Part shown: in pieces, positions 9,295 to 57,684 of the stretch
How the letters are laid out: the number at the start of each line of letters is the position of its first letter
Position numbering within the stretch: the first letter of the stretch is position 1
Assembly: GCA_965240325.2 (NCBI GenBank)
Contig: OZ251223.1
Coordinates: 3,286,001-3,350,000 of the forward strand
Direction: 5' to 3'
DNA: 64,000 nt
From: Rebecca billardiae RCC1528
Lineage: Eukaryota > Protista > Haptophyta
The notes under the pieces: model-generated
Database searches by the model: none
Told to the model about the DNA's origin: nothing
The model's input: only the letters and a program-made list of their open reading frames with translations
Translations under genes and position numbers: made by a program

Positions 9295-10662
9295 ATGCTG
9301 CTGGTGCCCCCGGGCGCGGGGCCGCGGCCACCGGCGACGCTCGTGTCCGTGCCTTCCGAGAAGCACCTTCTCGAGCCCCCAGTGCCCCTCGTGTCTGCAG
9401 CCTCGCAGTCGCGGCTGCTCGCGCCGCCTGGACAGGAGCTGCACCAACGGCGAGGATCGACAAAGCCGGTGACCGAGCTCGCGCTGAGACCCCCCAAGCC
9501 CCGATCAGCGCAAACTCGCCGCCCACAGCAGCGCTCTTCTCTGGGTGGCCCGAAGTCGAGCGACCCATGGGAGCGCGAGAAAATCGCTCTGCTCCAGGTG
9601 CTCGGTCTCGAGGAGGCGGCTCTGCGCGACGAGCATCACACATCTGGCGTCGATGCTGCCGTTCTCGCGAGCGCTGCCGAGGATGCACGCGCGGACTTGG
9701 AGCAGGCATCCGCAGCGCATGGGAAGAAGGGCGCGGATAGCGATCGTCCAAGCGCATCGCCGAGTAAGCGCAAGGGCGCCGCCGCCGCCCCCGCCCCCGC
9801 CGCCCCCGCCGCCCCCGAGGCCTCCCGCGTCAGCTCGGAGCTGGTGGAGGCGACGAGCGCGCTTGCCACGGATGCGGCCACGCTGTCCAAGGCGAGCGTG
9901 GTCGCAGAGGAGAGGAGCACGCGCGCGCGGCGCGAGCGGCGAGGGCTGCGCAAGGCCCGCGCGAAGCTGGAGCTGGTGCTCAGTGCGGAGGCCATGACGC
10001 GCGAGTCGGCCAGGCTGCGCGTCGAGTACCAGGAGGAGCTCAAGAGCGCGCTGCTCGAGATGAGCCGCACGGGCGGCGCCGAGCGCACGGCGGGCGGATC
10101 CGACACGGCGGCGGCACAGGGCGCATACGCGCCGCGCACGGGGATGGGCTTGACGTCCGCCTCGCTGAATGCGTACACGCTCGCCGGCGCGCCGAACACC
10201 ACGCCTCGAGCACGCGGGCGAGCGCCCGTGTACAGGCAGTTTTGGGACTCGGCGGCGGTGCCGCTCTGCATCTCGCGCACAGGCTTGCAGGCGAGCTTTG
10301 TGCAGCGCCACAGGCCGCCGCGGCCGTGGCACGCGGGGGGCGCTTCGGAATCGCGGCCTCCGATGCCCCCGCCGCACATGACCGAAGGCGAAGCGCCCGG
10401 TTCGCGACGCAGCACTTCGGCATCGGCGGCCAGACTGCCGCCGCTCGACGGGCGGAATGGCCAGCGCGGTGCCGCGACCTTTGGGCACGAGCGTCCGTGG
10501 CGCTCGCCGACCAGAACACCTGGGGAATTCGGGAAGCCACCGGCGTTCCGTCCGCGGGTGGAGGCCATGCGTTCGGCCGTCACGTTTGCGACAGTGGACG
10601 TGCGCCGCTCGCCACCGCAGCATGCGACATCGCCGCCAGCTCACAGTGCTCGCGTGTCCTGA
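9295..10662 (+). CDS. Hypothetical protein (455 aa) with coiled-coil-like centre and Pro/Arg-rich C-terminus
   Basis: Long ATG-started ORF, divergent from SPO11; helical segment EEAALRDE...RVEYQEELKSALLEM; no family recognised. Confidence 0.6.
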   Translation: MLLVPPGAGPRPPATLVSVPSEKHLLEPPVPLVSAASQSRLLAPPGQELHQRRGSTKPVTELALRPPKPRSAQTRRPQQRSSLGGPKSSDPWEREKIALLQVLGLEEAALRDEHHTSGVDAAVLASAAEDARADLEQASAAHGKKGADSDRPSASPSKRKGAAAAPAPAAPAAPEASRVSSELVEATSALATDAATLSKASVVAEERSTRARRERRGLRKARAKLELVLSAEAMTRESARLRVEYQEELKSALLEMSRTGGAERTAGGSDTAAAQGAYAPRTGMGLTSASLNAYTLAGAPNTTPRARGRAPVYRQFWDSAAVPLCISRTGLQASFVQRHRPPRPWHAGGASESRPPMPPPHMTEGEAPGSRRSTSASAARLPPLDGRNGQRGAATFGHERPWRSPTRTPGEFGKPPAFRPRVEAMRSAVTFATVDVRRSPPQHATSPPAHSARVS

Positions 10663-49751: not shown

Positions 49752-52517
49752 TCAATCGGGCGCCGACGAACTGTGGCTGTGCGTGTGCTCGCGACGCGGC
49801 AGGCCGAAGCCGGTGCCCGCGTCCCCCGCGCGCAGCTCGTGCAGCACAGTGGCCATCTTGTCCGGCAGGTGGTCCACCAGGTTGTGCGCCACCTTGAGCT
49901 CGAGGAACTCATCGGCCGACACCCACAGCGCGCGGTATCGGACCGCCGCCGCGGCACAGCACAGCAGGCGCGAGTACGTCGCGCGGTCGCGGCCGACGCT
50001 CTCGAGGAGCATGATCCGCCCAGCGATGAAGAGCGGAGCGCGGCGGGGCAGCGCCGCCTCCTCCGCGGCTGGCGCCCACGCCGCGGCCGTCGGCACGGGC
50101 CCGTCATTGTCCGTGAGCCGGTTGAAGCCGTCAGACTCGGCGCGCGCCGCGCCGCCGCCGCGCGCGGCCGCGCGGTCGCTCGCCCAGGGCGGCGGCGCGC
50201 CCAGCGGGGTCCGGCGCCCGCCTGAGCCGAGGCACGCTCGGCGCGCGCCCTGCGCAAACGCGCGCAGCCACACGAGCCACTTGGGCGCCTCGCACGCGCG
50301 CATCTCGGCGACCATCTGCGCGGAGAGGGCGTCGACGGACGCGATGGAGAGGCGCGGCACCACGTCGCCCTCGAGCACGACGGTGAGGACGTGCGGCGCG
50401 AGCGCGGCGGCGGCGTCGCGCGGCAGCAGCGGCGGCGGCGAGAACGCGAGGCAGCGCGTGTCCGGGAAGCCCCTCGCGCGCAGCAGCACGCTCAGCAGCG
50501 TCGCCACGCCCGCGCCGAGCGAGTGGCCGGTCACGACCAGCTCGAAGCCTCGGAGCAAACCGGTGCTCGGGTGCAGCTGGCGCCGCAGCGTGTCTAGGAT
50601 GCGCGAGCTCTCGAGCTCGGCGAGGAGCTCGGTCGTCGCGTCGAGGATGCCCTTGTGGCTCGTCCACTGCGCGGAGCCGGCCTCGGCCGCAGGGGCGGCG
50701 GCCGCAGCGCCGACCGCAGCGGCGGCACCGCTGCCGGCGGCGCGCGCCGCTCGCCCGGCAGACGGCTCGGCCGCAGCCGCGGGCATGTCCGCGGATGGGC
50801 ACTCGGCGCCGAGGAGCGCCTCGCGCACGTCGCCGGCGTCGACTGGCTCGCAGTACGCGTCGGTCAGGATGTCGGCGGCGTCCATCGTGCCGCGCACGGC
50901 GATCACCACCGCGCGCCGCTCGCGATCCACGCACACGGCGTACGCGCACGCGCCCATCGGGCGGCCGCGCCGCGCCCAGTCCGCCGCGAGCATGTCGCCG
51001 GCCGCGACGCCGGCGACCTCGGAGAAGATGGTCTCGTACGCCGTGGCCTTCGTGTCGCGGCGGCGCGGCGTGCTGGGCGCGCGCGCGCGCGCAGCGGGTG
51101 CGAAGCAGCACGCGCAGCACCCCTCGGCCGCGCCGGGCGCGGGCGGTGCGCCGCGCGCGCACTGCGGACAGAGCACGGCGCGCGCCGCGCGCTCGTGCCC
51201 GATCCACAGGGCCATCACCCAGCCGTACGCGGCGAGGGCGAAGCGGATGAAATGGGCGGCGTCGTCGAGCATGTCTCGCTCGGACGCGTCCGCCAAGTCG
51301 AGCAGCCGCGTTGCAGCGTACGTGTACGGGCGCCACGCGCTGCGCCGCGCCATCTTGCGGCGGCGCGCAGAGCGCTCGCGCCGCAGGCTCGGGAGCGAGT
51401 TGTTGAGGGCGCTGTTGAGCGCCTGCCATCGGATCTGCGCGGCCTGCCCCGTCGCGACCGCGCGACCCGCCGAGCCGTCGGCGGGCGCGGCGCTGAGCGC
51501 CGCCGCGCGCGCGAAGCTGACCCGCTCGGCGTGCGACGAGATCACCAGCGCTGCCTCGAGCTCTGACACGGCCGCCTCCTCCGGCGTGCCCGGCACGTCG
51601 GCCGCGTCGGCCCAGACCTGCGCCGCGACTGTGGCGAGCGAGAGCGAGCCGTGCTCGCTCGTCTCGCCGCCTTCGGCGTCGGCACCGGCCGCCGCGTGCG
51701 CCTCGGCGCCGTCGCCGCCGTGCTCCGATCCGGCCTCGCGCGCGCACGCGTGCGAGGCATCGGGCGCGGCCGCTGCGTGCCCGAGGTTGGGCAGCCGCTG
51801 CTGCCGATCGCGCACGAGCAGAAGGGCGGTGAGAAGGTCGGAGAGCACGGCGTGCTGCGCGCCATGCGCCTCGAGGAGGTCGCCCAGCAGCATGCCGAGC
51901 GAGCTGTACACGTCGTCCGCACCGCGCCCCACGAAGCAGCAGCACATGGCCGCCAGCCGGTGCCGCCACCACTCCTCGCGCGGCACCATCGAGCTGTTGG
52001 ACCTCGTGGCCGAGAGCCACGCGGCGAGGATGAGGCCGGGCGTGAGCCCGGCGATGAGCACGAGCCACACGACCAGCGCGCTCTTCAGCTCGCTGTGCGC
52101 GCGCCCTCGCTCGTCCCGCCCGACGCACGCGCCAAACAGCTCGCGGTTCATCACGAGCCCAACGGACAGGAGAGCGGCCTCGCACGCGATCAGCACGAGC
52201 TCGAGCGTGAGGAGCGGGCCAACCGCACGGCGCTGATGAGGCTGCCACAGCTGACCGGAGCCAGAGCTCGCGGCGAGCGCCAGAGTTGCGATGAGCAGCG
52301 CCACCGCCAAGCCGGCCGCGGCTGAGACAAAGACAAAGATGCTATGCAGGCATTCGACGTTGGAATCGCCCGCCTCGCCGTCGAGGTGCACCTGGCGCGC
52401 CACGAAGGCGAGGTAGAACAGGTAGAGCACGCGTACGAGCGCGCCCATGAGGCCAAAGGCGACGAAGTCATCGTCTGCCACGGGCCAGCTGCGACCCGCC
52501 CATCTGAGCGCGGGCAT
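49752..52517 (-). CDS. sn1-diacylglycerol lipase (DAGL-like, Lipase_3)
   Basis: MPALRWAGRSWPVADDD (DAGL-type N-terminus), four TM segments, VVIAVRGT..AADILTD, HKGIL, VTGHSLGAG, CLAFSPP, DVVPRLS, DHLPD. Confidence 0.88.
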   Translation of the reverse strand: MPALRWAGRSWPVADDDFVAFGLMGALVRVLYLFYLAFVARQVHLDGEAGDSNVECLHSIFVFVSAAAGLAVALLIATLALAASSGSGQLWQPHQRRAVGPLLTLELVLIACEAALLSVGLVMNRELFGACVGRDERGRAHSELKSALVVWLVLIAGLTPGLILAAWLSATRSNSSMVPREEWWRHRLAAMCCCFVGRGADDVYSSLGMLLGDLLEAHGAQHAVLSDLLTALLLVRDRQQRLPNLGHAAAAPDASHACAREAGSEHGGDGAEAHAAAGADAEGGETSEHGSLSLATVAAQVWADAADVPGTPEEAAVSELEAALVISSHAERVSFARAAALSAAPADGSAGRAVATGQAAQIRWQALNSALNNSLPSLRRERSARRRKMARRSAWRPYTYAATRLLDLADASERDMLDDAAHFIRFALAAYGWVMALWIGHERAARAVLCPQCARGAPPAPGAAEGCCACCFAPAARARAPSTPRRRDTKATAYETIFSEVAGVAAGDMLAADWARRGRPMGACAYAVCVDRERRAVVIAVRGTMDAADILTDAYCEPVDAGDVREALLGAECPSADMPAAAAEPSAGRAARAAGSGAAAAVGAAAAAPAAEAGSAQWTSHKGILDATTELLAELESSRILDTLRRQLHPSTGLLRGFELVVTGHSLGAGVATLLSVLLRARGFPDTRCLAFSPPPLLPRDAAAALAPHVLTVVLEGDVVPRLSIASVDALSAQMVAEMRACEAPKWLVWLRAFAQGARRACLGSGGRRTPLGAPPPWASDRAAARGGGAARAESDGFNRLTDNDGPVPTAAAWAPAAEEAALPRRAPLFIAGRIMLLESVGRDRATYSRLLCCAAAAVRYRALWVSADEFLELKVAHNLVDHLPDKMATVLHELRAGDAGTGFGLPRREHTHSHSSSAPD

Positions 52518-52669
52518 GCGGAAGGACGCTTTCAAGCTTGATCAAGTTGATGATGGCCCGAGCCGCGCGCGAGCTGACGAGCGCGAGGCCGAGGCAAGCG
52601 GCGACCGGAACGACGAAGCCGGACTCTGGCGGCCGCCGCCCCGGCCGGGCCGGCCCCCCATCGATCGCG

Positions 52670-53425
52670 ATGGCGTCGCTGTGCAGACGATTTCTCGCTA
52701 GGTGTTGCCGCGTGGAGGTGCACATCTCGCCGGAGGTGGTGACGTTCCCGCCCCGGGGCCCGTGGGAGCGGTGTGGCGCATTGCTCTACGGCGCGAACCC
52801 GGAGCTTATCGGGCCGCGCTTCACCCCCTCCGAGGCGAACGCTCGGCTCGCGGGCAACCGCGAGCTCTCGCTTGGGCTCATCTATCCGGAGCAGTGCGTC
52901 GATGGGCAGGTGTCTGAGTACGGGGGGCGCGCGCTGCGCACCATGCTCGCGGCCTTCCCGGCGCAGCGCGGGGGTGAGCGAGCGCCGCGTGGCACCGTGC
53001 TGCTCACCGAGGCAGTGGGGCATCTGAAAATGAACTATGACCACCTGCTGCATGCGTGCCCGCCGCAGCACGACACTGCGAGCTGGGAGACGGAGGGGCG
53101 TGGCCAGCTCTTCAGTTGCTACACGGCCGCCTTCGAGCTCCTCTGGGGCAGGGGCTGCCCGCCGACCGCCGACGGGACTCAGCCAGCCAGCATGGCATGC
53201 GCTTTGCTTGGCGCAGGCGCGTGTGGCGTCCCCGTGAGCGAGGCGGCAGCCGTCTTTGCCGCTGCTGTCACGCAGTGGGTGCGCCCAGAAGAGAGTCTGG
53301 GTGCGCCCTCGCCAACTCTCGAGCCACCCGCCGGGCCAGTGGTGTGCATGACTGTCGTCGACGAGCTCACAGCAGACGTTGTCATCGACGCGATGGACAG
53401 TGCGCTCATCAGCAGCACGGGCTGA
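52670..53425 (+). CDS. Macro-domain (ADP-ribose-binding/hydrolase-like) protein, divergent
   Basis: ALLYGANPEL...VDGQVSEYGG, GTVLLTEA, LLHACPP, LFSCYTAAF, MACALLGAGACG. Confidence 0.7.
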   Translation: MASLCRRFLARCCRVEVHISPEVVTFPPRGPWERCGALLYGANPELIGPRFTPSEANARLAGNRELSLGLIYPEQCVDGQVSEYGGRALRTMLAAFPAQRGGERAPRGTVLLTEAVGHLKMNYDHLLHACPPQHDTASWETEGRGQLFSCYTAAFELLWGRGCPPTADGTQPASMACALLGAGACGVPVSEAAAVFAAAVTQWVRPEESLGAPSPTLEPPAGPVVCMTVVDELTADVVIDAMDSALISSTG

Positions 53426-53612
53426 CGCTCTGAAGACACTGAAGTCTGAGACTGAGACTGAGGCCACTGACACTGTGACTGTCATCAGCGCGTCATCATG
53501 AGAAAAACGCGCCGCGGGACGCGAATTTTGTCATCGTCATATCATCATCAGCCTGAGTCTGAGGCATCGTCATAGCGCTCATCAGCATGACTGCTTATCG
53601 GATTCATCCAGT

Positions 53613-53805: not shown

Positions 53806-56490
53806 TTAGGATAACATCGTCACAGCCATCGGAGTCCGTCGGCAGCGTTGTGCCGGGTCACACACATGGCGCACAGCCTCAAATCGCCGCAGCCGCTCCG
53901 AGGGGCTCAGCGCCATGCATGGCAGATTGTCGGGAGCGCCTGCCACTGCGTGGTGCGCCTTGCCCAGATGTGGAATGCCTCCAAGTCTCTGCATGAGCCG
54001 CTCGAAGCCCAGGAGCGCCTGTGCCATCGGCGCAGCAGTCCGCCACCAGACGTTGAAGCACGCCACGTCCTGACCGCCACCGTTGACCGCAAGCAGGGCA
54101 GGCCGATGGGCTGCGGCAGCGACCAGCTTGATCTCGAGCAGCTGGCCGGCGTGCGGCGCGCCCAGCTCAGCGTGAACGGCGCCCATCACCTGCCCTAGCC
54201 GGTGCAGTGGAAACGCGTATTCGCTGGACACCCAGGCAGCCTCCCCGCCAGCCAAGCCGGCGCCGCACGTGTCCTGCCGGCCATCTGCCGGAGAGCTGCG
54301 CACACCCTCGGCCCCCGTCTCGCGGGCGACGGCCTCGTCATCTCCCGCAGGCAGCGCGAATGTGGCGCCTGCGTCGGCGCCGTCGTGCCCACGCGCCGAG
54401 TGCGCACGGGCGAACCAGTTGCGCCCGCTCTGCGGCACGGCGGGCTCGCCGCCGCACGCCGAGCACTCGCCCGGCGCCGTGCGGGCCAGGCAGGTGAGCA
54501 CGGCCTCTGCTTCCCCCAGCCGCCAGTGCGCCCAGGCGTGCTCGTGCGATCGCGCGCACGCGACCAGCTGCTCCGCCGCGTCGTCGGTGAGCATCGGCAG
54601 CCGGTGCTGGCACCGACTCAGCGCGTGGGCGGGCACGACCTCGAGCTCGACTGCGACGACGACACCCAGCATGCCGCAGCCCGCGCGCCACGCGGCCAGC
54701 TGCTCGTCCGCCGCCCCTGTGCCTGCGGGCGTCCCTGTGAGCCAGCTCGCCCCTTGCTCACAGCGCGCGTCGCTGGCTGGCGCCACGGCGGCGGCGGCGG
54801 CTGGCGTGACCACGCACACGCCCGTCACGCTGTTGGACAGCGTGCCGTGGCGCAGGCTCGAGCCGTGCGAGCCGAAAGCGATGGCGCCGCCCACCGTCTG
54901 CTCGAGCAGCATCGGCGGCGCGGCAAGGGTGAGGCCGCGAGCGGCCAGCCAGCGCAGCAGGGTGCTGAGCAGCGTGCCTGCGCCAACCCGTACCCGCGTG
55001 ATGGGCTCGCCGTCGGCCGTGGCGTCCGTCGCGCCCGCCCGCGGCGCGGGCCGCACGTACTCCAGGCGGCGCGTCTCGAGGCGGAGACTCACCTCTGCCT
55101 GCCCCCAGCACGTCCAGGAGTGCTCGGTGCCGACGACGGCAACTGTGCCAGTGTGGCCTCTGAGCGCCGCGGCGACGTCGCGCGCGCTGAGCGGCATGCA
55201 CGTGAGCGCGGCGTGCATCACGCGAGTCCCCGTGGCGTTGGGCACGGCCGGCAGGCGCACGGGGCACAGAGGCGATGCCTCCACACGCACTGCCGACTGC
55301 GCGCGCGCTGCCGCCAGAATGGCTTGCACGACTCTGAGGTCGCACAGCGCGTCCCTCGCGGACGTGTGATGCGCCTCGGCGGCACGGCCCCGTGAGAGCT
55401 GGCCCGCGGCACGCGCGACCGCGAGCATCGCGTCGGCCAGCGCCTCGCGCACGCCGCCGCTCACCCAGCCGTCCCCCTGCACGCGCACGGTGCGCGGCTC
55501 GGCGGGTGGGCGCTCGAGGACAATGGTCTGCGCGTCCGCGTCCCAGGTGAGCGCGCCCGTGCTCCCGCGCACGCGCACGCGCGCCAGCTGCGAAGGCGGC
55601 TCGGCGCCCGGCCGGCCCGACTGCTGCTCGACGAAATGCCACGACAACTCGCCCACAACACGCCCCGCCGCCGCCGCCTCCGCGTGTGACGGGCCGACTG
55701 GCAGTGGGGGGCTGTCGCTGCGCTCGTCGTCGTGGCCACAGTGGGCAAGCCACGCGGTGCCGCGCTCGCCATCACCGTGCATGCTCACGCGGGAGACAGC
55801 GCATGGCTCCCCGAACCAGATCCGCAGCGCCCGCACGACGTGCACGACCACGTCGGTCAGCCAGTAGCCGTCATACGCGCCGGGCTGGCGCCATGCGCAC
55901 CGGTCGAGCGGCGGCACTGTGCGCACCAGCTCGAAGCGATAGTCCAGTGGCTGGCCGAGCGCGCCCTCCTCGAGGAGGTCACGCACGGCGCGCACGCCCG
56001 GCTTGCACGCCCAGTTCTCGAGCACGCACCACGCCAGCGGGCGCTCCGCGGTCTCGAGCAGGCGCAGCACCTCCTCCGCGCGCGCTGCCGACTCACCACA
56101 GATCGGCTTCTCGGAGATGACGTGCTTCCCCGCGAGAAGGGCGGCGCGCACGAGGTCGAGCTGGAGCGGGATCGGCGCTGCGAGGTCAACCACGTCGACG
56201 GACGAGTCGGACAGAAGCTCATCTATGCCGGTGTACCATTGGAGCTGCTCTCCCCATCCGCCCAGGCGCTTGCGGCCGGCGGTGACATCGCGCGTGCATG
56301 CAGAGACAACGCGCACCTCGACTGAGGATCCACCCGGAGCGCGTCGCTCGAGGCGCTGCAGGGCGGGAATGTGAGCACGGCGCATGATGAAGCCTCCCAC
56401 ACCGCAAATGCCCACGCCCAGCCCCCGTCGACTGCTCGCAGCAGTGGCCGGGCTCGACCAGCTTGCAGGAGCGGTCTGCTCGTCGGCCAT
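53806..56490 (-). CDS. Fusion of a Gfo/Idh/MocA NAD(P) oxidoreductase and an FAD-linked aldonolactone oxidase (ALO/GULO-like)
   Basis: N-terminal half: VGICGVG, LLSDSSVDVVDLAAP, ALLAGKHVISEKP, DVVVH. C-terminal half: VVGTEHSW, VGAGTLL, QTVGGAIAFGSHGS, GMLGVV, SEYAFP, GGIPHLGK, VCDP. One uninterrupted ORF. Confidence 0.85.
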   Translation of the reverse strand: MADEQTAPASWSSPATAASSRRGLGVGICGVGGFIMRRAHIPALQRLERRAPGGSSVEVRVVSACTRDVTAGRKRLGGWGEQLQWYTGIDELLSDSSVDVVDLAAPIPLQLDLVRAALLAGKHVISEKPICGESAARAEEVLRLLETAERPLAWCVLENWACKPGVRAVRDLLEEGALGQPLDYRFELVRTVPPLDRCAWRQPGAYDGYWLTDVVVHVVRALRIWFGEPCAVSRVSMHGDGERGTAWLAHCGHDDERSDSPPLPVGPSHAEAAAAGRVVGELSWHFVEQQSGRPGAEPPSQLARVRVRGSTGALTWDADAQTIVLERPPAEPRTVRVQGDGWVSGGVREALADAMLAVARAAGQLSRGRAAEAHHTSARDALCDLRVVQAILAAARAQSAVRVEASPLCPVRLPAVPNATGTRVMHAALTCMPLSARDVAAALRGHTGTVAVVGTEHSWTCWGQAEVSLRLETRRLEYVRPAPRAGATDATADGEPITRVRVGAGTLLSTLLRWLAARGLTLAAPPMLLEQTVGGAIAFGSHGSSLRHGTLSNSVTGVCVVTPAAAAAVAPASDARCEQGASWLTGTPAGTGAADEQLAAWRAGCGMLGVVVAVELEVVPAHALSRCQHRLPMLTDDAAEQLVACARSHEHAWAHWRLGEAEAVLTCLARTAPGECSACGGEPAVPQSGRNWFARAHSARGHDGADAGATFALPAGDDEAVARETGAEGVRSSPADGRQDTCGAGLAGGEAAWVSSEYAFPLHRLGQVMGAVHAELGAPHAGQLLEIKLVAAAAHRPALLAVNGGGQDVACFNVWWRTAAPMAQALLGFERLMQRLGGIPHLGKAHHAVAGAPDNLPCMALSPSERLRRFEAVRHVCDPAQRCRRTPMAVTMLS

Positions 56491-56867
56491 CGTGGGTGAT
56501 TCTACCTTAGTAACCTAACCTGTCTCTTATTCTTAGTCATCATACAAACTGTAGTATCATGACACAGCGGTAAGCAGCTACGACTATTAATTGGCGCAGG
56601 GGCCAGGGGCCCGCACCGGGGCACCCCACCATCCGAGTCCCGGGACGACCGAAGCAGCATCAGTTGTCGCACTTCCGGACCGCCGGCCCGGCGCTCCCGC
56701 TCCGTGGTCGAGTGGATGGACAGTGGTCGGCACGCGCGCCGGCGCGGCCTCCGAGCCGCCTCCGCGGGTCGTGCAGATCCGGTGGCCGGTGGCCGATTGT
56801 ATCAAGCCACCGCGGTCACCAGCAAGTGATCAGCGCACATCGGTGACTCCCGGCTGGGCGGCGCGGC

Positions 56868-57684
56868 TCAGATCTCGTACTTGAGATCGGGGACGTTTTT
56901 CGAGTCGCCGTTGCCCTCCATCAGAGCGTCCTGTGCGGCGGTCACGCGGAGGATCGTCTTCTTGCTCGGCTCCTGCGCGCAGCAGCGTGCGCGCAAAGGT
57001 GCTCGTCAGGGTGGACACGGGCGCAGGGCGGTGGCGAAGATGGGGCGGCATGGTGCGGCGTGGACGCACGCTGGTGCGTTTGACGTGCCTGCAGCTCGCC
57101 CGACATCATCAGCTCATCGAGGATGTGGTACGCCTTGTGGAAGTTGAAGATGAGGTCGAGCTCACACACGTTGCCAAAATAGCGGTCGAGGACCTCGACA
57201 AAGTGGTGGATGGTTTCGAGGACGATCAGCTCGTTGTCGGTGGTGTCGACGCACGCGATGAAGTACAAGCTCGCATAGCGCTTGTAGATGACCTTAAGGT
57301 CGCGCCAGTCCAAAAAGTTGCACTGCTTCTGCTGCCGCGACAACACCATCGCACTCACCTGACGAGCGGCAGCCAGAGGGCGCACGGTGCGATGGCGGGC
57401 GAGGCGTGATGAGCGCGGTGATCACGCCAGGCGCCCGCGCACCCGATGACGCACCTCACGCGTCGTCCGTGTCTTCTCCTTCGCGTTGTAGGGAGAATAC
57501 CACTTTGTCAGCCGGACCTTGCCCTGTCGGCTGCGGGTGCGCAATCCGACGCGCGGGAGCACCGCCGAGAGTGTGGCACGAAGGCGTGCGTGGTCAGAGC
57601 GCGGGCGAGCTGCTAGCGGAGCGCGTGCGTCGGCACGACCGGGGACCGTCGGGCGCACCTGATGAGCATCACGAAGTGAATCAT
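56868..57684 (-). CDS. AP1S: AP-1 adaptor complex sigma subunit; exons 57684-57659, 57530-57455, 57358-57089, 56972-56868
   Basis: [72 protein letters not shown]|EPSKK. Confidence 0.93.

Follow-up and report, generated by a model that had tools for sequence, protein, structure and literature searches.

Introduction

In mycobacteria, DprE1 and DprE2 make up a two-enzyme epimerase for decaprenyl-phospho-ribose, in which an FAD oxidase and an NAD(P)H enzyme work on a glycan precursor via a labile keto intermediate. DprE1 belongs to the FAD_binding_4 and ALO clade, as do the alditol oxidases and the aldonolactone oxidoreductases. The alditol oxidases AldO of Streptomyces coelicolor (PDB 2vfr) and AldOAb (8ot8) consist of a VAO-type FAD domain and a short ALO-type cap. 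The aldonolactone oxidoreductases include GULO, ALO, GalDH and GLDH (8qmy, 8qnb), and we know of none that is fused to a dehydrogenase. In all of them Arg388 (GalDH numbering) is conserved and pairs with Lys456 to hold the 2-alkoxide (PMC11099136), and the C-terminal motif HWXK is a feature of the group (PMC11505616). Haptophytes carry GLDH (PMC4396506). The Gfo/Idh/MocA protein TM0312 of Thermotoga maritima (1zh8) is itself uncharacterised; cellobiose induces its operon, TM0312-13 (PMC3750489).

Here we describe a gene in a window of 64,000 nucleotides from Rebecca billardiae RCC1528 (contig OZ251223.1). It is a single-exon gene from a haptophyte of the Pavlovales kind, and it encodes a predicted bifunctional carbohydrate oxidoreductase of a conserved, uncharacterised fusion family. 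Both halves of the protein belong to well-studied enzyme families.

One uninterrupted reading frame encodes both modules

The open reading frame (ORF) on the minus strand translates to 894 amino acids without a stop, and its two halves are joined without a frame change (Table 1). GC3 in this frame is 0.71-0.92 over the whole length, codon position 2 has the lowest GC, and both flanks are AT-richer spacers. Because of this GC3 pattern, the spacers and the end-to-end alignment of relatives, the ORF is coding and not a chance open frame in GC-rich DNA. The deposited gene model (P0001) has 859 residues and begins at Met36; since that start loses strand β1 and the glycine-rich loop, the 894-residue ORF is the better model. 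Both folds are present in an AlphaFold2 model of the full protein (pTM 0.77), and besides the insert listed in Table 1 there is a second lineage-specific, low-complexity insert, predicted to be disordered, at residues 572-591. An initial annotation had described one intronless 894-residue ORF joining two modules, which the ORF listing, translation, Pfam matches and colinear relatives bear out. The motifs that it quoted for both modules were all found in the translation, alignment and residue table, and the Pfam matches and motifs uphold its view that two modules that look complete and apparently active are joined in one gene. In R. billardiae the fusion gene lies beside unrelated genes, one for a class-3 lipase and one for the small chain of a clathrin adaptor.

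Table 1. Features of the fusion gene, with positions in the window and residue numbers of the 894-residue protein
Feature	Position	Strand	Basis
Whole coding sequence, 894 codons and stop, one exon, ATG start	53806..56490	(-)	ORF listing, translation, colinear alignment to relatives
AT-richer spacer just 5′ of the ATG, presumably promoter and 5′ UTR	56491..56620	(-)	Base composition
NAD(P)-binding Rossmann domain, residues 24-150; loop 28-33, T66-R67, E127-K128-P129	56041..56421	(-)	PF01408, residue table, model strands/helices
C-terminal alpha/beta domain, residues 151-404; E158-N159-W160, K163, W200-R201, D213/H217	55279..56040	(-)	PF22725 and PF02894, TM0312 profile, Foldseek
D340-x-W342-x-x-G345-G346 motif	55453..55473	(-)	Family alignments, residue table
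FAD-binding (PCMH/VAO-type) domain, residues about 421-632	54595..55230	(-)	PF01565; HMM alignments to AldO 2vfr, AldOAb 8ot8, GLDH 8qmy
H457, covalent-flavin position	55120-55122	(-)	HMM alignment
P526, oxygen gatekeeper position	54913-54915	(-)	Mapped via GLDH Ala113 and AldO Ala105
Cap (substrate) domain, ALO/AldO type, residues 633-894	53809..54594	(-)	PF04030; cap profile; invariant residues
Low-complexity insert in cap domain, residues 694-748, predicted disordered, lineage-specific	54247..54411	(-)	pLDDT <50; gap columns in most relatives
E786-x-K788	54127-54135	(-)	Cap domain residue table
N813	54052-54054	(-)	Cap domain residue table
H841-K844 of P840-H-L-G-K844	53959-53970	(-)	Cap domain residue table

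The N-terminal half is closest to TM0312

Residues 24-404 form a complete Gfo/Idh/MocA module. Pfam GFO_IDH_MocA (PF01408) covers residues 25-150 with a score of 50.9 bits (cut-off 24; 3e-13) and GFO_IDH_MocA_C3 (PF22725) covers residues 166-234 (30.4 bits against 27). The alpha/beta domain closes with a conserved helix at residues 378-397, for which the family consensus is EALRDxAV with an invariant D384. The catalytic features of the Gfo/Idh/MocA enzymes are present, namely the glycine-rich loop at 28-33, Lys128 of EKP and D213xxxH217. K128, D213 and H217 are invariant across the fusion family, and the loop is not. T66-R67 follows strand β2 (family consensus C-S-R) and resembles an NADP-type signature, although a preference for NADP read from single residues would follow a rule with known exceptions. 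The DxWxxGG motif does not vary within the fusion family, and neither TM0312 nor ordinary single-domain Gfo/Idh/MocA proteins have it; in the sequences compared, this makes it a family signature, and it may have a role at the domain interface.

Among PDB profiles, TM0312 (1zh8) is by far the best match to this half (4e-53, 184 bits), with every other at 113 bits or less. The two share S/T-R after strand β2, EKP, ENF/W, W-R and D-x3-H, and Foldseek superposes the two-domain fold of this half on 1zh8 (target TM-score 0.83, E 3e-20). Further Foldseek matches are scyllo-inositol dehydrogenase, AFR and levoglucosan dehydrogenase. Unlike the R. billardiae protein, TM0312 is single-domain and lacks the DxWxxGG insert, and, being uncharacterised, it lends no function to this half. 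Behind TM0312, the top-scoring proteins of established function include WlbA (3q2k, 3q2i) and KijD10 (3rbv), two enzymes for C3 of nucleotide sugars, both at about 1e-31. GFOR, aldose-aldose oxidoreductase, WlbA and KijD10 match about equally (1e-27 to 1e-31), so these scores leave open which carbon is attacked, and no notable closeness to aldose 1-dehydrogenases was seen in the comparison with PDB profiles.

The C-terminal half is an alditol-oxidase-like flavoenzyme with an altered active site

A complete FAD_binding_4 and ALO-type flavoenzyme module occupies residues about 420-894. Pfam FAD_binding_4 (PF01565) matches residues 448-563 (37.4 bits, cut-off 26.4), and ALO (PF04030) matches residues 755-881 with a marginal pass (23.4 bits, cut-off 23.1); the ALO score is higher in relatives, for example 66 bits in P0013. 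The motifs of this half are GTEH457SW, TVGGAIAFGSHG at 532-543 (including H542-G543) and GGIPHLGK at 837-844. In comparison with PDB profiles the half aligns end to end with AldO (9e-51) and AldOAb (7e-48). Its FAD domain matches the GLDH profile at 8e-50, the profile match to DprE1 is at 8e-27, and the cap-domain profile retrieves only AldO (1.5e-12) and AldOAb (1e-9), with GLDH not found at E values up to 1. Foldseek finds AldO (target TM-score 0.71-0.73, the VAO fold) and GLDH. By profile scores against PDB and NCBIfam, the half is assigned to the VAO-type flavoenzymes of the alditol-oxidase, aldonolactone-oxidoreductase and DprE1 clade. The NCBIfam DprE1 model matches 20 of 23 family members. 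In sequence AldO is a far closer match than DprE1, and the R. billardiae protein scores 14.3 bits with NF053785, where the cut-off is 500.

Like AldO and AldOAb, the protein keeps the histidine at the covalent-FAD position, a glutamate, H542 and the lysine of H-x-G-K. In the HMM alignment, H457 falls on the covalent-FAD histidine of alditol oxidase (His46 in the literature, residue 50 in the PDB chain) and is therefore predicted to be placed for an 8α-histidyl link. Unlike them, its module stands behind a Gfo/Idh/MocA enzyme, carries the two disordered inserts and has proline at the gatekeeper position, where they have Ala or Gly. A histidine together with a non-Ala gatekeeper is also the pattern of oxidase-type GULO and ALO, and would point to O2 as the electron acceptor; such a reading from a single residue has known exceptions. 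AldO is one of them, an oxidase despite Ala at this position. Of the AldO active-site set (Ser106, Glu320, Arg322, His343, Thr345, Lys375 and His46), only the glutamate, Lys375 and His46 are kept. The R. billardiae protein has Met for Ser106, Lys for Arg322, Asn for His343 and Trp for Thr345, and its score with the alditol oxidase model TIGR01679 is 54.7 bits against a cut-off of 292. A MurB-like relay of electrons from NADPH to FAD was also considered and dropped, because its sole support was a match at 0.06 and, to our knowledge, VAO-clade sugar oxidases do not take NADPH.

The fusion is conserved in algae and a bacterial clade

The initial annotation did not recognise the architecture; an exhaustive HMMER search returned about 30 clusters (at 50% identity) that share it, aligning colinearly with both halves. 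Annotated proteins of Diacronema lutheri, Prorocentrum, Cymbomonas and Chrysophaeum belong to them, other members are from Polykrikos and bacterial metagenome-assembled genomes (MAGs), and two are assembled transcripts (Polykrikos, TRINITY; and MMETSP). The nearest relative, Diacronema lutheri KAG8458724.1, has 38% full-length identity to the R. billardiae protein, and the tree pairs the two with support of 100/99. The distribution is patchy, with at least four algal lineages and one bacterial clade. Members carry automatic names only, one of them L-gulono-1,4-lactone dehydrogenase (JGI), and literature searches for a Gfo/Idh/MocA-FAD/ALO fusion found no paper.

Across 22 aligned members 24 columns are invariant, among them the catalytic residues of both halves. 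The invariant residues that mark the family include K128, E158-N159, W200-R201, D213, H217, D340..G345-G346, D384, S458, H542-G543, E786, K788, N813 and PHxGK. The R. billardiae protein keeps all of these and the colinear two-module architecture. The junction between the halves is conserved as well, including helix 378-397 and P427.

A word-index protein search with the whole protein and the C-domain alignment returned almost only the protein itself, a misleading blank since low-complexity words dominate the index. In the ESM Atlas, searched by features and by shape, there were single-domain clusters only and no large fusion cluster. A GTDB scan gave 80 loci, mostly ordinary single-domain genes because the search patterns fell within the Gfo/Idh/MocA half, with the fusion in only three Alphaproteobacteria MAGs. 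The closest standalone Gfo/Idh/MocA genes in GTDB, from Chloroflexota, had no gene for the C-terminal half nearby.

Relatives are linked to glycan-synthesis genes

In one bacterial relative (P0010), a single ORF combines GT43, Gfo/Idh/MocA, FAD and ALO domains. At locus L089, one uninterrupted ORF joins the ALO part to a GT2 domain, following on from the Gfo/Idh/MocA-FAD reading across a short change of frame. L090 resembles it, although the alignment of the R. billardiae protein reaches residue 563 only and the continuation rests on gene models P0060 and P0107, each with a GT2 domain; P0107 is probably over-merged, because it also contains HPF1. The spliced GT2-bearing gene of these two loci was read as separate exons. 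Elsewhere the link is one of proximity: a GT2 gene neighbours the fusion at L003, a Wzx-type Polysacc_synt gene lies 10 nt downstream at L008 with MBOAT and GDSL genes upstream, and directly upstream on the same strand at L091 are genes for LicD, an IspD and SDR protein (CDP-ribitol-synthase-like) and an NTP-transferase. In the tree, these links fall on three or more separate branches. The relatives that supply them are only 25-31% identical to the R. billardiae protein, which has no glycosyltransferase domain. In some other bacterial contexts no glycan genes were seen: L007 has an FGGY kinase and a cupin together with sugar MFS transporters, and L092 and L094 hold mobile elements.

Discussion

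Relatives of this protein are fused to or lie beside glycosyltransferases, a Wzx-type flippase and sugar- or alditol-activating enzymes, and we therefore propose, tentatively and at a little short of even confidence, that the fusion protein is a carbohydrate oxidoreductase working in two steps on a building block for glycans or glycosides. Two steps on a single carbohydrate, as in the initial annotation, are the natural reading. The N-terminal half is a TM0312-like Gfo/Idh/MocA dehydrogenase/reductase with Lys128 of EKP and the pair Asp213 and His217. In the flavin module, Glu786, Lys788, Asn813, His841 and Lys844 stand at the positions that face the substrate in alditol oxidase. This module would abstract hydride from a C-OH group of a sugar or polyol, with Lys788 and Lys844 holding the alkoxide, and pass the electrons to O2. 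The Gfo/Idh/MocA module would act on that molecule too, by hydride transfer with NADP(H), in which case a labile carbonyl intermediate would be passed from site to site. The candidate substrate is a sugar or alditol linked to a nucleotide, a lipid or an acceptor. The two steps could be an oxidation followed by a reduction, giving net epimerisation as with DprE1/DprE2, or two successive oxidations.

The resemblance to DprE1/DprE2 would lie in the pairing of an oxidase with an NAD(P)H enzyme and in the glycan-synthesis genes around relatives. Unlike the N-terminal half here, DprE2 is a short-chain reductase on a separate polypeptide. Epimerase chemistry is something that we infer by analogy, and we think it rather less likely than not that the family does on one chain what DprE1 and DprE2 do on two, remodelling a sugar or alditol unit, by epimerisation or double oxidation, for a partner glycosyltransferase.

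The annotation's own proposal was an ascorbate-type enzyme: the Gfo/Idh/MocA half would make a 1,4-lactone by oxidising a free aldose such as L-galactose, L-gulose or D-arabinose, the flavin half would turn this lactone into ascorbate or an analogue of it by oxidation at C2, and the fusion would capture the hydrolysable lactone. An ALO-type module is indeed present, and several likenesses go further. Glu786 and Lys844 are the counterparts of GalDH Glu386 and Lys456, a lysine at 788 could hold an alkoxide all the same, there is a GLDH match in the FAD domain, His457 and the gatekeeper recall oxidase-type GULO and ALO, and the sugar-1,4-lactone oxidase model TIGR01678 is the family's second-best NCBIfam model (best E 5e-45). 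Aldose 1-dehydrogenases are numerous among Gfo/Idh/MocA enzymes, dehydrogenases for L-arabinose, D-galactose and L-glucose appear among the PDB matches, the JGI name agrees, and a fused glycosyltransferase might conceivably make glycosides of an ascorbate analogue. An ALO or GULO identity, however, does not follow. Lysine replaces AldO Arg322, which we take from published knowledge, rather than from an alignment of our own, to be GalDH Arg388, in all 20 members aligned there. HWXK is replaced by H841-L-G-K844, its second residue being W, L, F or Y across the family. The scores fall far below the curated cut-offs (TIGR01678, 44.9 against 396.8 bits; TIGR01677, 38.7 against 383.1; TIGR01676, the GLDH model, 18.3 against 458.25), and the cap is not detectably GLDH-like in sequence, retrieving AldO instead. 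Moreover, haptophytes already have GLDH (PMC4396506), bacterial members sit in polysaccharide-type clusters or carry a fused GT43, and the half proposed to make the lactone is by far closest to uncharacterised TM0312 and not to aldose 1-dehydrogenases. On these points the ascorbate-type reading is unlikely, and the enzyme may still carry out lactone chemistry.

Slightly less likely still is the catabolism of free polyols or turnover of osmolytes, in which the flavin half would oxidise the terminal CH2OH of an alditol to an aldose and the other half would turn this into an aldonolactone. Alditol oxidases are the best full-length structural family for the C-terminal half and the only one that its cap matches; an FGGY sugar kinase lies near the gene at L004 and L007, the latter also with the sugar transporters, and D-xylose dehydrogenase Gfo6 is among the NCBIfam matches of the N-terminal half (9e-11). 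Yet four AldO substrate- or flavin-contact residues are replaced family-wide (Ser106 by Met, Leu, Val or Phe; Arg322 by Lys; His343 by Asn; Thr345 by Trp, Leu or Tyr), with positions 527 and 815 varying but never returning to the AldO residue. The glycosyltransferase fusions would be left unexplained, and because the aldose intermediate is stable, a conserved fusion would have little reason. A link to the cyclitol osmolytes of Pavlovales was also considered, and no evidence for it was obtained. As for the gene itself, chance long ORFs are common at about 75% GC, many overlapping ORFs lie in the window, the ALO score is marginal and a search for RNA runs of this alga listed 0. A misreading of two neighbouring genes as a single one, or a pseudogene in decay, would nonetheless be hard to square with a join free of stops and frame changes, uniform GC3, a conserved junction, the same join in about 30 clusters with two transcripts among them, and the retention of every family-invariant residue. 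We regard such an artefact as highly improbable and the fusion gene as almost certainly real and conserved.

Should the family be such a single-chain DprE1/DprE2-like system, it would provide an unusual sugar unit to the surface glycans or scales in haptophytes, dinoflagellates, prasinophytes and pelagophytes, as well as to polysaccharides in some bacteria, and would be a new route to a rare sugar. An alternative route to ascorbate-type compounds is the less likely outcome; neither an ALO Pfam domain nor an automatic gulonolactone dehydrogenase name is evidence for vitamin C synthesis. The family, repeatedly joined to glycosyltransferases, offers a defined, clonable candidate for a step in algal or bacterial surface-sugar synthesis, with a distinctive active-site signature of Glu-x-Lys, Asn, HxGK and DxWxxGG.

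The fusion gene encodes two catalytic modules on one chain

Long ORFs arise frequently by chance in DNA as GC-rich as the region around the fusion ORF (0.69-0.76, with an AT-richer spacer at each end), and direct signs of coding were therefore sought. In the ORF listing and translation the frame is free of stops, its GC3 stays between 0.71 and 0.92 over the entire length, and codon position 2 has the lowest GC. Together with four Pfam domains (see table), this bears out the initial annotation's description of a single ORF joining two modules, and all of the motifs it quoted are found in the protein. In the public gene model P0001 (859 aa), translation begins at Met36, so that strand beta-1 and the glycine-rich NAD(P) loop are lost, although every relative has both. 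The 894-aa reading, with its upstream ATG, is the better one. The AlphaFold2 model of the protein has a mean pLDDT of 74 and a pTM of 0.77, with three disordered inserts. As judged from sequence, two complete modules share one chain with the predicted catalytic residues of both retained, and we consider it very improbable that the fusion is an artefact.

Coordinates of the fusion gene, its domains and residues, its neighbors and selected relatives
Feature	Location	Remark
Fusion ORF	window 53806-56490 (-)	ATG at 56490, 894 codons
Part missing from P0001	window 56383-56490 (-)	strand beta-1 and glycine-rich loop
GFO_IDH_MocA	residues 25-150	Pfam
GFO_IDH_MocA_C3	residues 166-234	Pfam
DxWxxGG	residues 340-346	invariant across the family
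FAD_binding_4	residues 448-563	Pfam
ALO	residues 755-881	Pfam, marginally over cut-off
His457		covalent-flavin histidine position
Pro526		oxygen-gatekeeper position; GalDH Ala113, AldO Ala105
Glu786		AldO Glu320 position
Lys788		AldO Arg322 position
Asn813		AldO His343 position
Lys844		AldO Lys375 position
Class-3 lipase ORF	window 49752-52535 (-)	927 aa; PF01764, 2e-14
317-aa ORF	window 52532-53485 (-)	start codon 53485; no Pfam match
Clathrin adaptor small chain	window 56942-57385 (-)	PF01217, 8.5e-40; just upstream of fusion gene
GT43-fused bacterial protein	L004:9263-12229	988 aa; also in L005 and L006
LicD to fusion gene	L091:1953-8321	same strand
Split C half	L011:9085-11735	Alphaproteobacteria MAG
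P0024 gene in two pieces	L007:10001-12311	last ALO part a separate 77-aa ORF

The class-3 lipase and clathrin adaptor genes in the window are unrelated to the fusion gene. The lipase ORF overlaps the end of the 317-aa ORF, and both look like unrelated downstream neighbors. Because the adaptor match is limited to positions 32-127 of the profile, another exon probably lies at the 5′ end of this gene.

The fusion is old, conserved and fairly rare

The initial annotation had not recognized the architecture, but it is not unique to this genome: the same arrangement occurs in other algae and in bacterial MAGs. Searched exhaustively with HMMER, a set of 1.84 billion representatives yielded 4588 matches (28 with E < 1e-30), many of them 680-1035 aa long and covering both halves. 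BLASTP covered both halves colinearly in 29 representatives, and an alignment of 22 sequences keeps 24 columns invariant, distributed across both. A word-index protein search had returned only the window protein itself, a blank that is misleading given the later HMMER matches. The nearest relative, Diacronema lutheri KAG8458724.1 (871 aa; identity 38-42%, 38% over the full length), pairs with the window protein in the tree (support 100/99), and the bacterial members, from Alphaproteobacteria MAGs and one Frankiales MAG, form a single clade (100/100). Further members come from Pavlovales sp. CCMP2436 (a partial model), Prorocentrum cordatum, Polykrikos kofoidii (a TRINITY transcript), an MMETSP transcript, Cymbomonas tetramitiformis and Chrysophaeum taylorii; in the two transcript-derived relatives both halves lie on one mRNA. 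Names of members are all automatic, such as ‘predicted dehydrogenase/FAD/FMN-containing dehydrogenase’, ‘FAD-binding PCMH-type domain-containing protein’ and, for some, ‘L-gulono-1,4-lactone dehydrogenase’. Literature searches for the Gfo/Idh/MocA-FAD-ALO architecture found no paper, and the ESM Atlas held no large cluster with it. The fusion is real, old, conserved and fairly rare, and the window gene is a new, divergent member of a family made of two known enzyme kinds.

Each half is assigned to a broad enzyme class

The best match of the family's N-half profile is the putative Thermotoga maritima oxidoreductase TM0312 (1zh8; 4e-53, 184 bits), encoded in an operon that cellobiose induces (PMC3750489). 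Other matches reach at most 113 bits and are mixed in kind: WlbA UDP-sugar 3-dehydrogenases (3q2k, 3q2i), glucose-fructose oxidoreductase, the dTDP-sugar 3-ketoreductase KijD10, levoglucosan dehydrogenase and aldose-aldose oxidoreductase. Lys128 (of EKP), Asp213 and His217 are invariant in the family. The C-S-R that follows strand beta-2 in most members, C-T-R in the window protein, suggests by analogy that the cofactor is NADP(H). Unlike the fusion family, TM0312 and ordinary single-domain relatives lack the DxWxxGG motif. The N half is an intact Gfo/Idh/MocA enzyme, with no specific mark of an aldose 1-dehydrogenase.

The C-half profile matches alditol oxidases end to end (2vfr, 9e-51; AldOAb 8ot8, 7e-48), whereas its match to GLDH (8e-50) is limited to the FAD domain and that to DprE1 is weaker (8e-27). 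With the cap alone, the two alditol oxidases are the sole matches, and GLDH gave none at E up to 1. Foldseek also placed the entire C half on GLDH (target TM-score 0.65-0.66), so the difference in the cap lies in sequence, not fold. Residue positions were assigned via the alditol oxidase alignments. Histidine at position 457 is confined to one subgroup, the others having L, Y, S, N, T, Q, D or G.

The initial annotation had called this half an aldonolactone oxidase, an assignment that the residues argue against. An Arg388-Lys456 pair that holds the 2-alkoxide is conserved among aldonolactone oxidoreductases (Boverio et al. 2024; PMC11099136), whereas every fusion member has Lys at the Arg position; the HWXK motif described for all of these enzymes (PMC11505616) is HLGK in the window protein. 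These differences make that assignment less likely and are compatible with lactone chemistry. NCBIfam subfamily models all score far under cut-off, for the window protein in the order bact_FAD_ox, FAD_lactone_ox, pln_FAD_oxido, then GLDHase and DprE1; by the best E-value among family members, the DprE1 model comes ahead of GLDHase. The C half falls outside both GULO/ALO/GLDH and AldO, and is best described, on present alignments, as a separate subfamily within the AldO/ALO/DprE1 clade.

Bacterial and algal relatives show recurrent links to glycan synthesis

GT43 glycosyltransferases are known chiefly from animals and plants. In the bacterial protein P0010, a GT43 domain (Pfam 3e-30; human glucuronyltransferases 4e-16) precedes both modules in one ORF. 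On the alga-like contig L089, the window protein aligned in two successive frames, first at residues 24-562 and then at 556-853, and the second ORF continues directly into a GT2 domain; taken together, the two ORFs would make up a single Gfo/Idh/MocA-FAD-ALO-GT2 gene, interrupted by a small intron or a change of frame. The related contig L090 has the same layout, with the window protein aligned only up to residue 563 and the second ORF matched by gene models P0060 and P0107, each of which carries GT2. In P0107 (1912 aa), Gfo/Idh/MocA-FAD-GT2 is also joined to HPF1 (histone PARylation factor 1), probably a neighboring gene that the gene caller merged in.

Neighboring genes in relatives include a Wzx-type Polysacc_synt gene 10 nt downstream of the fusion gene, with MBOAT and GDSL genes upstream (L008), a convergent GT2 gene (L003), and a DUF3431 gene 18 nt upstream of a fusion protein with TPR repeats (L096). 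At L091, LicD, an IspD+SDR protein of CDP-ribitol-synthase type and an NTP-transferase precede the fusion gene and a flagellin gene adjoins, a row that may represent an island for glycosylation of flagellin or of the surface. Links to glycosyltransferases occur on three or more distinct branches of the tree. Out of line with this pattern are L007 (FGGY kinase, cupin, sugar transporters) and L092 and L094 (mobile elements).

A two-step reaction on a carbohydrate is likely

The idea of a two-step sugar enzyme, put forward in the initial annotation, remains likely, but its ascorbate reading is not supported. We tentatively favor a glycan or glycoside building block as the substrate, a distinctly possible reading, because of the Rosetta-stone and neighborhood evidence. 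We infer that the flavin module would oxidize a sugar or polyol C-OH, probably as an O2-using oxidase as the covalent-type His and Pro gatekeeper suggest (a rule with exceptions), and that the Gfo/Idh/MocA module would then act on the same carbohydrate by a hydride transfer linked to NADP(H). The two steps may be oxidation then reduction, a net epimerization like that of DprE1/DprE2, or two oxidations, and fusion may serve to hand over a labile carbonyl intermediate.

Conversion of an aldose through its lactone to an ascorbate analogue is unlikely. Haptophytes possess GLDH for making ascorbate (PMC4396506), so a second terminal enzyme would be superfluous, if conceivable. An AldO-like enzyme would instead turn an alditol into the aldose and then into the lactone; the end-to-end alditol oxidase match speaks for this and the substituted AldO residues against it, and it is quite unlikely too.

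Irregular relatives

At L011, the C part to residue ~321 ends at 10047 and the remainder resumes from 11412; a mobile element or an assembly error might account for the ~1.36 kb inserted. The split call at L007 suggests a frameshift or sequencing error in the metagenome contig. The metagenomic protein P0105 (1311 aa) combines DUF4246, a related Gfo/Idh/MocA module and a TauD-type dioxygenase.
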